In this document: in pieces, positions 6,231 through 60,189 of the stretch | How the letters are laid out: every line of letters starts with the position of its first letter | Numbering within the stretch: the stretch's first letter is position 1 | Assembly (NCBI RefSeq): GCF_006345805.1 | Contig: NC_043024.1 | Coordinates: forward strand, 17,112,001-17,176,000 | DNA length: 64,000 bases | Origin: Octopus sinensis | Taxonomy: Eukaryota | Reading direction: 5' to 3' | Notes under the pieces: model-generated | What the model was told of the DNA's origin: nothing | Database searches by the model: none | The model's input: the letters and a program-made list of their open reading frames with translations, nothing else | Made by a program: the position numbers and the translations under genes

Positions 6231-6277
6231 GTATTGTACTGATGAGGCCTGATAAACTGAAACAGGTCTATTGTTGC
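6231..6277 (+). ncRNA. Degenerate type I hammerhead ribozyme motif
   Basis: CUGAUGA (6239-6245), weak stem II, GAAA (6259-6262), AC-AG-GU, GUC site (6266-6268). Stems I and II are partly mismatched. Confidence 0.5.
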
Positions 6278-6859
6278 TTCCCTTGGCTTTGAGTAAATAA
6301 GTAAATTATGTTCATAAATTTAATTCTTAATTACTTGAAATTATTTCCCCATTTCTCTGAGAATTTCCTAACAGTTATTGATGGGTTTTAGGTTGTACCA
6401 ATCTTTACCCAGTGGGGTGGAGGAGAGAAGGGGCTCTGCATGGTCACAAAACATTGCTAGAAACAGAAGTCATATGAAGTGAAGTAACACATAAAATAAT
6501 ATAGTTTTTGGTAGACAATGTCTCTCATAATTGATTTTCTTATACAAATAATGGAATGAATGATTAACTTCCTCGTCTTTGTGCAAATGTAGTATCAACT
6601 TGGATTGTGTAGGGAAAGAGGATATGCACACATATAACTATATATATATATAACACAAATATACATATATATATACTCACACACACACATACACACATAT
6701 ATATATACTCACACATACACACACACACACGCATACAAATAGGTAGAATAGAGAGCTATGTATGCTTTTGTTCAACCCCTCAAAGGTCTCATCATCCCCT
6801 CAAGGAATATTTTTTACTGTTTGGAATATAATTGTCAATAGTTCTTATGAACTTACTGA

Positions 6860-7149
6860 TATCACCTCATCTATCTATCTGTTTGTCTGCCAGTCTGTCT
6901 GTCTATGTATATTTGTATGTATGTATGTATGGATGGATGGATGGATGGATGGATTGTTGTTTGTTTGTTTGTATGTATGCACATATGTATGTCTGTATCT
7001 ATCTACCTATATATCTATATATGTGTCTAACTATCTATCTATCTCTCTTTGTATATATATGATGCATATATGTATCTATCTATCTATCTATTTGTCTTTC
7101 TATATGTCTGTCTCTCTGTCTCTCTGTCTATCTCTTCCTATCTATTTAT

Positions 7150-7221
<72 letters not shown>

Positions 7222-7293
7222 TTATATATCTATCTTTTGTCTGTCTGTCTCTCTCTATCTATTTGTCTGTCTCTCTCCCTGTCCATTTGCCTA

Positions 7294-7347
<54 letters not shown>

Positions 7348-7460
7348 CATTTATTTATATGTCTGTCTGTATATTTATCTATCTATCTGTCTGTTTGTCT
7401 AATCTATCAATAAATTTATTTATCTGTCTGTCTGTCTATCTAGCTATCTGTCCGTCTATC
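6860..7460. repeat. (TCTA)n/(TCTG)n tetranucleotide microsatellite
   Basis: Direct reading; source of the artefactual 292-aa ORF. Confidence 0.95.
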
Positions 7461-57457: not shown

Positions 57458-57629
57458 CAGAGCTGGATTTACCATTGCGCTTAGGTGTACTCAAGCACAG
57501 GGTCCCTAAGTAAGGGGCCTTATAACAGGGCCCTGTCCAAGTAAAGGCCCTCATAATGGGGCTCTATCCAAGTAAGGGGCATTATTGCTTAACTAGCACA
57601 GGGCCACATTTGTCGTAAATGCAGCACTG
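57458..57629. mobile_element. hAT-type MITE
   Basis: Terminal inverted repeats CAGAGCTGGATTTAC / GTAAATGCAGCACTG; 8-bp near-TSD ACTGCATG / AGTGCATG; three internal ~31-bp repeats. Confidence 0.75.
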
Positions 57630-58870
57630 AGTGCATGGCACTAATATTCTTTTCTACCCTAGGTACAAGGCCCGAAATTTTGGGGGACGGGGCCAGTCAA
57701 TTAGATCAACACCAGTATGTAACTGGTACTTAATTTATTGACCCTGAAAGGATGAAAGACAAAGTTGACCTCGGTGGTAAAGACTGACGAAATACTGCTG
57801 AGCATTTTGCCCAGCGTGTGCATGGTGCTAATATTAGTCTTTTGTTATCTCCTTTGTGGGGTTCATCATCCAGAGATCCACCTTCTCAGGTTATCAATTT
57901 CTGCTTTTGGGATATTTCAGTGAATTAAGGAAACATCTGTTGCTGTTGGTGATGTGTCTTTCTATTGTTGTGATATTTTGCCTAAGGGTTAGGGTTAACG
58001 TGTCCAGTACTCTGTATTCTGTGCCATTTTCAAATAGTGTGAGGTACTGTGGATGTCTCACATCCTTCTTAAATGTCTGCTGCAGATATTTTAAAATGTA
58101 ATTTAATTCTTACATTGCAGAATTCAGATATAACTACTCGAAATTTCATTACTCTTAACCAAAGAAAGTATTTCTATAGAGCAGTCTGTCTTTTGTTGAT
58201 GAATGTCATGCTTGAAACTATTTTCAGTTGAGATATGTCAAGTTTATTGAGGCAATATGACTAACAGAAAATACCAATTCTGCTTTTTGGCAGATATTTA
58301 ACATCATTACTGAAATAACAAATTTATCAAATTTATTTAATTTTGCGATTAAAAGGTTAAGAGTTAAGATATAATCTATACCAATTCTTGACCATCAGAA
58401 CCTTCATAATTGTCCATAGTTTACCAATTTACAATTAGGATAAATAAATTCAATGCTTTTTTTCATGTGACTGACCAGACTATCAGATGTTGTTACACAT
58501 CGCTTGTCACAATGCGCTTTTGCATTGTTTAACCTTCAAATGATGCCACCGTTGCTGACAAGGCGAGCAGGCCAACAATTCTGCATGACTGAAGGGAGAG
58601 TGGAACAATTTGAAATGAAGTGCTTTGCTTAAGAACTCAATATGCCACCGAGTCAGGGAATTGAACCCTCAGTCCAGTGCTCATGAGTGTATAGGTGCAG
58701 GCGTGGCTGTGTGGTGAGAAGCTTGCTTCCCAGTCAGATGGTTCTGGTTTCAGTCCCACTGCGTGGCACCTTGCTTGAGTGTCTTTTACTATTGCGTCAG
58801 GCTGACCAAAACTTTGTGAGTGGGTTTGGTAGACAGAAACTGAAAGAAGTCAGTCATATATTTATATATA

Positions 58871-59077
58871 AATATTCTATAATTATATACATAATTATAA
58901 TAAAGGGTTAGCTAATTGTTTCACCACATACTGAATTTTAAAAAAATGCTAATGTCTTTTCAACTACCATGAAATTTTATGGTATTTGAAAAGGCATTAG
59001 CATCTATTTCTAATTCAGTACGTGGTGAGACAATTAGTAACCCTTTATTATAATTATGTATATAACTATAGAATATT
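58871..59077. repeat. AT-rich fold-back (~100-bp arms) with possible decayed U3-A8 hammerheads
   Basis: Arms meet at GAAATTTT (58971-58978); each arm reads GGTA(G/T) TTGAAAA G ... GA(A/G)A CAATTAG outward. Confidence 0.75.
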
Positions 59078-59849
59078 TTGTTTAAAAGGTTTTTTAATGT
59101 ACTGACTATTTGGTGAAATTGTTATTATTAATAATCTTACCCTATATATATATGTGTGTTTCTATTTGGATATATTTGGGGTACTTAAATGTATTCATGA
59201 CTTTGCATCTACTTTTCCATAGGTATGTCTAAGTATTTCATTTATTTTCATTTTGTGTTCCTCGCTGATGAAGGAAGAATCCTTTTTAATACAGAAATCA
59301 GAACTGATTCAAGGATGACTATATTTTGATGAATTTCTGTTAGCTTGCTTTCTTTGTTTTAACACATGGTGTAATAATACAAGTGAAAATATTTTATGTT
59401 GTCAGACGATTTAGCATCTGATTTACAACATATTGGAAGAGAAAAATTTTTTTCTCTTGCCCTTATTTATAATTATATTTATAATTTTCATCTTAAATGG
59501 TATTTTTCATATCCTGGCCACTGATAACATTTTTTAAGAAAATTTTATCCTTATATTACCGGAGCCTGGTGCAGCCTTCTGGCTTCCCAGATCCCCGGTC
59601 GAACCGTCCAACCCATGCTAGCATGGAGAACGGACGTTAAACGATGATGATGATGATGATGATTAGAAGTGTATATATATATATTGTTATCGCCATATTA
59701 ATATGGCAGTCTTATAGATATAAGACTAAAAGCTGTCGCTGATTAGCTCCGTGAGGCCATCGCCTTAAGATAGCTATTTGACACACAAACTGTGTCCATT
59801 ATAACCTTTGAACAAGGGAGGTCAGCCGTTTCACACTGCTAGTCAGACA

Positions 59850-59892
59850 GCTTCAGACGCGTTTCAGGGTATTTGCCCCTTGTCAATGTAGC
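59850..59892 (-). ncRNA. Minimal type I hammerhead ribozyme motif with U3-A8 core
   Basis: GCUACA UUGACAA GGGG CAAAUA CCCU GAAA C GC G UC UGAAGC: stem I 5 of 6 bp, 4-bp stem II, palindrome ACGCGU, GUC site. Confidence 0.8.
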
Positions 59893-59987
59893 GTAGTCGA
59901 CCCAGCAGGTGTCGCCACTGATCGTCTCTGTTCGAAGGTTTTATTTACCTAGTTTCGGTGGAATACATCCACTTGTTTTCAATAATA

Positions 59988-60189
59988 GAAATATTAAAAT
60001 TACTAAGTCTCTCTAAGAAGACAGACAAGCAGGAAGGAAAGGTCAAGTTAAGAGTGCGCGTCATAATTATTGAAATAAAACTTACTTGGAAGAGGACACG
60101 TGGCGTTATGTATGCATGTTTTATTTATTAAATTGTTATTATATGATTGAATGTCACACGTCCTCTTTCAAGAGAGACTTAGTAATTTT

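Follow-up and report, generated by a model that had tools for sequence, protein, structure and literature searches.

Do the fold-back elements in a 64,000-nucleotide stretch of Octopus sinensis DNA (RefSeq assembly GCF_006345805.1, contig NC_043024.1, positions 17,112,001 to 17,176,000 of the forward strand) carry hammerhead ribozymes (HHRs) and, if so, what kind of mobile element left them there? This whole stretch is called here the window; positions are counted from its first letter and elements are named by their approximate position in kilobases (kb). The question was raised by an earlier note, made from the sequence alone, which described several sequence-unrelated inverted-repeat families with outward-reading hammerhead motifs and proposed that they are ribozyme-bearing elements mobilised by Penelope machinery. 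Taken as a set, the motifs are not chance, and their sequences support real minimal type-I hammerhead motifs with a palindromic helix III. The elements that carry them are probably (we would put the probability at about 0.6) relics of short, non-coding retroelements of the Penelope-like element (PLE) type, each with a minimal type-I hammerhead.

Hammerhead motifs and chance expectation

The window was searched with a type-I descriptor made of a helix I of at least 4 bp, the core N3-UGA-N-N8-A, in which positions 3 and 8 had to form a Watson-Crick pair, 0 or 1 additional nt, a helix II of 4 bp or more whose loop could reach 70-80 nt, the GAAA box, a helix III of 1-5 bp and a U followed by H; the succession of the three helices (I-II-III-I') is enforced by the descriptor. 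The strict form tolerated no mismatch and the relaxed form one mismatch per helix, a palindromic loop 3 being required by neither. The strict descriptor gave four matches, against 0.17 expected from 60 dinucleotide shuffles, with 0-1 match for each of the scrambled-core decoys run on the real sequence (n=23), and the relaxed one gave 10, against 2.09 in shuffles (maximum 7, n=200) and 1.52 in decoys (maximum 5). Motif frequency, which the earlier note had proposed to compare with composition-matched shuffles, thus lies clearly above them. Among the relaxed matches, the C3-G8 class numbers four (0.24 expected), and a palindromic helix III/loop 3 is present in five (0.105 expected), namely the five best matches, with the sequences ACGG-UGCA-UCGU, ACCA-AU-UGGU, AC-AGCU-GU, AA-UA-UU and AC-GC-GU. 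In 1000 shuffles, the palindromic matches expected per class were 0.011 for C-G, 0.027 for G-C and 0.032 for U-A; the probability of at least two palindromic matches outside the C-G class was 0.003, and palindromic G-C matches with at least 15 bp, i.e., as good as the real one, were expected 0.002 times. Moreover, the sequence-only pattern CTGANGA-N8-95-GAAAC-N0-8-GTH occurs six times, against 0.7 expected. The A-U class matches at 15905, 54054 and 59315, and also the match at 63450, resemble background, and for non-C-G cores considered without the palindrome criterion the class counts are close to expectation.

Exact core boxes (C3-U-G-A-N-G8-A9, G12-A-A, A15.1/U16.1 and H17 other than G) are found at 2094-2200(-), 36955-37035(+), 51058-51138(+), 50898-50978(-), 22229-22310(-) and 20360-20453(+), and core boxes with a swapped 3-8 pair at 38026-38078(-), with G-C, and 59851-59892(-), with U-A. 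The minimum-energy fold computed with ViennaRNA recovers the three-way junction for the right arm at 51.0 kb (z=-2.3), the left arm at 38.0 kb (z=-2.8) and the motifs at 2.1 kb (z=-4.1) and 37.0 kb (z=-0.8), and differs from a hammerhead for the motifs at position 6231 and at 20.4 kb and for the left arm at 32.4 kb. An unpaired nucleotide stands between A9 and position 10.1 at 38.0 (G), 51.0 (C) and 22.2/37.0 kb (A), and is lacking at 2.1, 20.4 and 59.87 kb. The pair G10.1-C11.1 is formed directly at 38.0 kb and, only if an extra A is allowed before G12, at 51.0 and 37.0 kb; its place is taken by A-U at 2.1 kb and by G.U at 59.87 and 20.4 kb.

The cores quoted by the earlier note were recovered where it had placed them, namely CUGAAGA at 36959(+), CUGAUGA at 6239(+) and 22306(-), CUGAGGA at 51064(+) and 50972(-), GUGAACA at 38070(-), 38115(+) and 35577(+), UUGACAA at 59886(-) and UUGAAAA at 32917(+), and fold-backs with an outward-reading motif were confirmed at 22.2, 35.5/38.0 and 51.0 kb. 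Of the loci that it had named, 22.2/37.0, 35.5/38.0 and 51.0 kb stand, 32.4 kb has decayed, one arm reading CUGAAAA and the other having no core left, and 32.9 kb falls, as do 58.9 and 60.0 kb, which it had given only as possible. It had overlooked two motifs, 20360-20453(+) and 2094-2200(-), the latter being the best of the window.

Families of motif-bearing elements

The elements with canonical cores at 2.1 and 51.0 kb comprise the following features.

1972-2439, minus strand (sense): 2.1 kb element, a 468-bp insertion with a perfect 14-nt flanking direct repeat
1958-1971 (left) and 2440-2453 (right): target-site duplication ATATAGATATATAT of the 2.1 kb element, with exactly two occurrences in the window
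2351-2439: 5'-terminal hairpin of the 2.1 kb element, in which ~35-45 nt of the 5' end are repeated in inverted orientation with 91% complementarity
2094-2200, minus strand: best hammerhead motif of the window, core CUGAAGA at 2192
50733-51302: 51.0 kb fold-back of 570 bp, arms of ~270-280 nt, 88-92% complementary, loop of ~13 nt
51058-51138, plus strand: right-arm hammerhead motif at 51.0 kb, core CUGAGGA at 51064
50898-50978, minus strand: left-arm copy at 51.0 kb, core CUGAGGA (at 50972) and helices I and III intact, helix II base mutated

In the 2.1 kb motif, helix I (AUUUCUUG/CAAGAAAU) has 8 bp, helix II (AUCUG..CAGAU) bears a 58-nt rod and is followed by GAAA, and helix III reads ACGG-UGCA-UCGU with A at H17, helices I and II being present in the minimum-energy fold (z=-4.07). 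The right arm at 51.0 kb reads UUCCUG CUGAGGA C GAUUU..(36 nt)..AAAUC A GAAA CCA-AU-UGG U U CAGGAA; its helix III is a 10-nt palindrome, ACCAAUUGGU, and its minimum-energy fold contains the complete three-way junction (z=-2.26). The families are mostly unrelated by BLAST, as the earlier note had stated, except that these two elements share ~125 nt, beginning at the cleavage site and extending into the 3' tail, with ~70% identity (z=10.7, 0/300 shuffles). Several differences between them leave the helices paired: depending on the element, pair 3 of helix I is U-A or C-G and the 15.3-16.3 pair of helix III is G-C or C-G, and the base of helix II is wholly different yet paired (AUCUG/CAGAU at 2.1 kb and GAUUU/AAAUC at 51.0 kb). 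These helix differences are the sole covariation evidence here, and they concern the canonical core. When transcribed by read-through, the 51.0 kb fold-back is predicted to give a hairpin of ~270 bp at -398 kcal/mol, the hammerhead fold alone reaching -19 kcal/mol. Read-through RNA would hence be an extended double strand and not a ribozyme, so that a fold-back is unlikely to work as a ribozyme unit and more probably arose as a by-product of insertion.

The remaining motifs with CUGAUGA or related cores, some of them decayed, are the following.

22176-22500: 22.2 kb old fold-back of the 22.2/37.0 family, arms 73-79% complementary
22229-22310, minus strand: left-arm hammerhead motif at 22.2 kb, reading outward, CUGAUGA at 22306
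22345-22425, plus strand: right-arm copy at 22.2 kb, inactivated, core AUGAUGA (C3 to A), loop GGCU, G at H17
36955-37035, plus strand: 37.0 kb solo fragment of the 22.2/37.0 family, CUGAAGA at 36959
20360-20453, plus strand: solo CUGAUGA motif, core at 20366, helix II of 11 bp, helix I of 6 bp, loop 3 non-palindromic
6239-6268, plus strand: weak or decayed CUGAUGA..GAAAC-AG-GUC, in which a paired helix II and the GAAA box are mutually exclusive
32384-32714: 32.4 kb old fold-back, arms ~75% complementary, with a decayed motif
32438-32499, minus strand: left-arm decayed motif at 32.4 kb, GGAUAA CUGAAAA (G8 to A) .. GAAAC UCGGAG UU UUAUC

The left arm at 22.2 kb reads GGCU CUGAUGA A GCAAUA..UAUAGU A GAAAC AGUU GUA AGCU and the 37.0 kb fragment GGCU CUGAAGA A GCUA..(44 nt)..UAGC A GAAAC AGCU GUA AGCU, the minimum-energy fold of the latter containing helices I and II. 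In the right arm at 32.4 kb the 5' core box is unrecognisable. The weak motifs at position 6231 and at 20.4 and 32.9 kb may individually have arisen by chance.

Cores in which the 3-8 pair is swapped, or had been proposed to be, are located as follows.

35426-35699: copy 1 of the G3-C8 family (35.5 kb), flanked by the 10-nt ATATATGTAT (35416-25 and 35700-09), left arm internally deleted
35568-35621, plus strand: right-arm GUGAACA motif of copy 1, core at 35577, decayed
37889-38162: copy 2 of the G3-C8 family (38.0 kb), fold centre at ~38093, right arm internally deleted
37875-37888 (left) and 38163-38176 (right): target-site duplication TTTGTATATATTTA of copy 2, with exactly two occurrences in the window
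38026-38078, minus strand: intact G3-C8 motif, GUGAACA, core at 38070
38106-38144, plus strand: right-arm motif of copy 2, GUGAACA at 38115, cut by the deletion after GAA
59851-59892, minus strand: solo U3-A8 motif UUGACAA, core at 59886
32779-33042: 95% palindrome at 32.9 kb, UUGAAAA at 32917(+), motif parts in the right arm only

The intact motif of copy 2 combines an 8-bp helix I (UUUUGUCA/UGACAAAA), a bulged G, a helix II made of GUCGC-9 nt-GCGAC with G10.1-C11.1, GAAA, the palindromic AAUAUU and U at H17; helices I and II are found in both the minimum-energy and the centroid folds (z=-2.81). In copy 1 the motif reads UUUUUGUCA GUGAACA G GUCUC..GCAAU GAAA AUAUU U UGACAAAU, with helix II disrupted by CpG-type changes. 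The two copies were inserted independently, with separate duplications. They have the same fold centre and a common one-sided extension of ~57-65 nt (left end of copy 2), and each has lost a different part of one arm after insertion. The chance expectation for the G3-C8 motif is ~0.002, and what speaks for it is the sequence of three arms of one family. Tentatively, and with more doubt than confidence, the 35.5/38.0 family may be read as a natural hammerhead whose 3-8 pair has been inverted to G3-C8 and which would have been functional in the master copy, the fold-backs being formed anew with every insertion, when the reverse transcriptase (RT) snaps back at a fixed 5' end of the RNA, rather than being two independent copies. 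In the literature, we did not find a natural G3-C8 core reported, the swap being found only as an engineered variant (PMC3884650). From its sequence, G3-C8 is possibly the only new core feature of the window, U3-A8 being known already. A protein search with the translated frame of the 38.0 kb element gave no match, an ORF product of the window had no identical counterpart in an exact look-up, and the 33 matches of an 18-mer of the G3-C8 motif in a metagenome scan were all unrelated chance matches.

The U3-A8 cores of the earlier note hold for UUGACAA at 59.87 kb, as a solo motif, and fail for the UUGAAAA examples. The former reads GCUACA UUGACAA GGGG-CAAAUA-CCCU GAAAC-GC-GUC UGAAGC and lies ~95-130 nt outward of a 28-nt inverted repeat (59987-60014 / 60171-60198). 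This repeat belongs to a nested arrangement (59987-60701), in which it encloses a 156-nt segment that is found inverted again at 60539-60701 with 94-98% identity, microsatellites and a short interspersed nuclear element (SINE) lying between the segment copies. At 32.9 kb, the right arm contains UUGAAAA-G-GUUGCA..UGCAAC-GAAA (32912-32955), and was rejected as a hammerhead with a helix I of just 3 bp, an A at G12 in one arm and GAAA in one arm only. Its sequence UUGAAAA-G-GUUGCA..UGCAAC-GAAAAUUUUAGGACAAUAAA resembles GUGAACA-G-GUCGC..GCGAC-GAAAAUAUUUUGACAAAAUAAA of 38026-38078, and the 32.9 kb element may be a 5'-truncated relative of the 38.0 kb motif. A U-A/G-C covariation at 3-8 drawn from this homology was rejected (z=4.5 for the whole arm, z=0.6 for the downstream part only), the similarity signal being confined to the motif region. 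The candidate at 58.9 kb, in which helix III cannot be closed and one arm is devoid of GAAA, was also rejected, and the inverted repeat at 60.0-60.7 kb was not supported as a hammerhead.

Insertion architecture and origin

Clean target-site duplications flank three insertions: they measure 14 nt (1972-2439), 14 nt (37889-38162) and 10 nt (35426-35699), all in TA-rich targets. Duplications of such lengths, variable from one insertion to the next, and targets in TA-rich microsatellite DNA speak for target-primed reverse transcription and against a cut-and-paste mechanism. No convincing duplication was found at 51.0, 22.2, 32.4, 32.9, 39.7 and 58.9 kb. All six motifs associated with fold-backs (6/6) read outward from the centre, so that the fold centre is the 5' side of both arms. 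Moreover, the inverted arm always begins at the centre and never exceeds the main arm in length: it measures 28 nt at 59.9 kb, ~35-45 nt at 2.1 kb and ~150 of ~215 nt at 35.5/38.0 kb, and has its full length at 51.0, 22.2 and 32.4 kb. The fold-backs at 2.1 and 59.87 kb, and also those at 35.5/38.0 kb, are asymmetric, and symmetric terminal inverted repeats with a short duplication of fixed length are not seen at 35.5/38.0 and 2.1 kb. The insertions thus share with those of PLEs duplications of variable length, inverted 5' portions, a common one-sided extension and TA-rich flanks. The proposal of the earlier note is borne out as far as it concerns motifs lying in short non-coding insertions, with duplications of the retroelement type and a PLE-like head-to-head geometry; its link to Penelope machinery is putative, the window containing no open reading frame (ORF) for RT/GIY-YIG.

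Under the PLE reading, which is drawn from the sequences, a source PLE, or a non-autonomous derivative of its terminal repeats, would be transcribed, and the minimal hammerhead would process a longer precursor RNA, probably as a dimer formed through the palindromic helix III. The RNA would then be copied into TA-rich DNA by target-primed reverse transcription. On reaching the template's 5' end, the enzyme would either copy back along the new cDNA or lay down a second, inverted and 5'-truncated copy. Resolution of this intermediate at a variable point would give a fold-back of variable length, sometimes with a one-sided tail, and genomic copies would subsequently decay neutrally, most of them probably being inactive. 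The window elements themselves could be PLE copies with a severe 5' truncation, or could derive from PLE terminal repeats as non-autonomous elements. As no RT or GIY-YIG remnant is present, the Penelope assignment is based on the motif type and on the architecture.

Several observations weigh against this reading. No coding remnant of RT or GIY-YIG was found in the window, and nothing of the kind was recognisable when the ~1 kb preceding each of the solo motifs (20.4 and 6.2 kb) was translated; the link to the PLE machinery would be one of resemblance, no autonomous PLE with a matching tail being in hand. Rfam hammerhead models, including Hammerhead_1 (RF00163), gave no match at the gathering score or at E<=10 in the window and in two 100-nt slices. 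Duplications are lacking at 51.0, 22.2 and 32.4 kb, and those of 10-14 bp equally fit a SINE insertion mediated by a long interspersed nuclear element (LINE). Regarding the motifs, the helix II rods of 36-58 nt in four families and the extra A between 11.1 and G12 in two families lie outside the published description of minimal HHRs, two motifs have A-U or G.U at 10.1-11.1, and metazoan minimal HHRs cleave poorly in vitro (PMC4209133). Each family has 1-3 copies, and core positions are not measurably better conserved than the flanks, a comparison which, with only 2-3 copies per family, has no statistical power.

Other origins have to be weighed against the same evidence. The elements might be hammerhead-bearing, SINE-like sequences mobilised by LINEs, as with the Sm-alpha repeat of Schistosoma, their fold-backs arising by a 5' inversion similar to twin priming. 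Their short, non-coding sequences and duplications of 10-14 bp would suit such an origin, as would a window saturated with SINEs in which no PLE ORF lies nearby; we nevertheless consider it rather unlikely, since the motifs are minimal with a palindromic helix III as in PLEs, and not of the canonical loop-loop type, since the 3' tail is neither poly(A) nor a simple repeat and no tRNA-like head is present, and since a one-sided tail with an inverted 5' copy is a hallmark of PLEs. It is unlikely that the elements are relics of non-LTR (long terminal repeat) retrozymes, i.e., of tandem hammerhead repeats spreading through small circular RNAs: the units are inverted or solo, with no head-to-tail array of hammerhead units in the window according to Tandem Repeats Finder, and their ends do not coincide with the cleavage site, even if arms of 150-280 nt fall within the monomer range, type-I hammerheads and a low GC content are also retrozyme features (PMC7229834) and retrozymes have themselves been argued to descend from PLE terminal repeats.

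Ordinary fold-back DNA transposons, of the miniature inverted-repeat transposable element (MITE) kind, in which the hammerhead-like strings would be coincidental, are an explanation that we find very unlikely. Such elements could account for the near-perfect palindromes and hammerhead-free fold-backs of the window (39.7, 1.85, 33.3 and 58.9 kb) and for symmetric fold-backs devoid of detected duplications, but not for motifs that far exceed shuffle and decoy expectation with a palindromic loop 3 in 5/5 best matches, for their invariably outward orientation, or for the asymmetry and the variable 10-14 bp duplications at 35.5/38.0 and 2.1 kb. Least probable of all would be pure chance, a permissive descriptor having been applied to AT-rich, hairpin-rich DNA with no hammerhead ancestry. 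The random look of the A-U class matches (15905, 54054 and 59315) and of 63450, the near-expected counts of the non-C-G classes when the palindrome is ignored and the silence of Rfam agree with it; for the whole set, chance is disfavoured by the counts of the C-G class (4 vs 0.24) and of the palindromic matches (5 vs 0.1 expected), by scrambled cores that yield 0-5 matches on the real sequence and by the helix-preserving changes between the 2.1 and 51.0 kb homologues.

Surrounding repeats and known systems

The window is AT-rich (GC 35-40%), with abundant microsatellites and SINE copies, and contains no convincing protein-coding ORF and no tRNA in its 64 kb. The abundant SINE of ~160 nt is found at 5202-5604 and at least 12 further sites (e.g., 25202-25369, 46757-46924, 61389-61557 and 58698-58860); by BLAST within the window, the fold-back at 5.4 kb (5202-5604) consists of two inverted copies of it, and the open frame of its consensus, used as a translated query, had no protein match. 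A second repeat family (47523-47756, 39276-39513 and 62326-62551) also occurs at 10001-10351 of a 20-kb locus of an Octopus vulgaris chromosome (OX597819.1). Its ORF, with the motif SEFKFHRGRLC, is annotated in Octopus vulgaris as a "hypothetical predicted protein" and described as a SINE-derived ORF; the label is probably a repeat-derived annotation artefact. The window SINEs are 85-90% identical to those of this Octopus vulgaris locus, in whose 20 kb no copy of any of the hammerhead families was found. The same locus contains an inverted duplication of ~900 nt (1556-2458 / 4681-5581, 87-97% identity) around a microsatellite block, each arm carrying an outward CUGAAGA-12 nt-GAAAC-A-GUA (1593-1620 minus and 5517-5544 plus) with poor helices.

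Tandem repeats in the window include one at 1315-1519 (a 63-nt unit, 3.3 copies, 92% matches) and a 16-nt minisatellite at 56770-57164 (25 copies of TATCATGGTAACAGGG). Seven fold-backs, at 1.85, 5.4, 33.3, 34.7, 39.7, 58.9 and 60.0-60.7 kb, have no hammerhead motif. Among them, a 98-99% perfect palindrome of 207 bp (39592-39798), with no hammerhead core, and its diverged relative at 1757-1944 (~70% identity) look like a young MITE-like fold-back family, separate from the hammerhead elements. The inverted repeat at 34.7 kb (34580-34662 / 34795-34877, 76% complementary, 133 nt apart) has only half-motifs in its arms, CUGAUGU..GAACA and ..GCAGAAAC-AAAU-GUU, from which a complete core cannot be assembled. 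Sub-threshold Rfam matches to microRNA precursors (MIR8007 with 91 bits, MIR7486 with 64 bits, and mir-297, mir-3149 and mir-466 by dozens) coincide without exception with fold-back elements or with (TG/TA)n microsatellites (32787-33032, 38049-38137, 29781-29864 and many more), and are artefacts, not microRNA genes. Fold-backs account for many of the spurious "microRNA precursor" matches and hairpins in octopus genome annotation.

How do these elements compare with known systems? Minimal HHRs were reported in PLE terminal repeats and, by thousands, dispersed across metazoan genomes (Cervera and de la Pena, 2014, PMC4209133), with a short helix I, a long helix II, G10.1-C11.1 and, following A9, one nucleotide that stays unpaired. 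Their hallmark is a palindromic helix III, with action as dimers; dual motifs lie on opposite strands 100-700 bp apart and the U3-A8 core had ~1300 matches in Schistosoma mansoni (PMC4209133), a natural U3-A8 being also found by Perreault et al. (2011, PMC3088659). The novelty suggested by the earlier note was hence overstated, minimal HHRs, the A9 bulge, U3-A8 and opposite-strand pairs having all been published in 2014 (PMC4209133). Like these ribozymes, the window motifs are of type I with an open helix I of 4-8 bp, have the unpaired nucleotide between A9 and 10.1 together with G10.1-C11.1 in three families (38.0, 51.0 and 22.2/37.0, the pair at 51.0 and 37.0 kb only with the extra A before G12 allowed), a short palindromic helix III implying dimer action and a U3-A8 variant, and form heterogeneous families in one genome, most copies being solo and some paired on opposite strands 100-700 bp apart. 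They differ by helix II rods of 36-58 nt in four families, against 6-8 bp published, by the extra A before G12 (two families) and the G3-C8 core (one family), and by their context, neither ORF nor remnant of an element encoding RT and GIY-YIG endonuclease, in whose pseudo-long terminal repeat (pLTR) a PLE minimal HHR would be expected, having been seen in the window.

In PLE insertions themselves, a 5'-truncated copy adjoins the 5' end in inverted orientation, a tail of 30-40 bp is found on one side only, duplications vary in length and targets have a (TA)n bias (Craig et al., 2021, PMC8557442). The window elements are similar in their inverted 5'-truncated copy abutting the 5' end, one-end extension, variable duplications and (TA)n-type microsatellites, whereas their units are just 270-570 bp and non-coding, the extension reaches ~57-65 nt rather than 30-40, and the inverted part of two elements, with 28-45 nt, resembles a snap-back rather than a second copy. 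With non-LTR retrozymes (Cervera and de la Pena, 2020, PMC7229834; Li et al., 2026) they share a small, AT-rich, non-autonomous nature and a type-I hammerhead, and the PLE origin is one proposed for the retrozymes, animal retrozymes having been argued in the latter preprint to come from PLE terminal repeats; the retrozymes form head-to-tail arrays (repeats of 170-400 bp) with cleavage sites as their limits, an arrangement that the window lacks, and their expression yields circles. The catalytic core boxes are common to the window motifs and to the Rfam models, Hammerhead_1 (RF00163) and its relatives, but the window motifs are devoid of the closed helix I, loop-loop contacts and stable helix III of the models. 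Fold-back and MITE DNA transposons are alike in their long inverted arms and small size, and unlike in that the window elements have asymmetric ends, variable duplications of 10-14 bp and an oriented ribozyme motif per arm.

In the cephalopod literature, we found only a count, namely 235 Rfam Hammerhead_1 matches in the giant squid (PMC6962438). If confirmed genome-wide, the window motifs would extend the catalogue of PLE-type minimal hammerheads to cephalopods, and searches restricted to CUGANGA would undercount such hammerheads. The small fold-backs with clean duplications offer compact examples of the PLE structure of an inverted copy plus tail, the mechanism of which is unsettled and of which, if the snap-back reading is true, they would be a readable record, keeping the trace of how Penelope-type integration is resolved. 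On the sequences at hand, what goes beyond published systems would be limited to G3-C8 in one family and to details of the fold-backs. Engineered hammerheads with a C3G/G8C swap have been mentioned (PMC3884650) and contain the same G-C swap, as laboratory mutants there and in a natural sequence here; if true, the G3-C8 core would show a further way, new among natural hammerheads, of forming the 3-8 tertiary pair.

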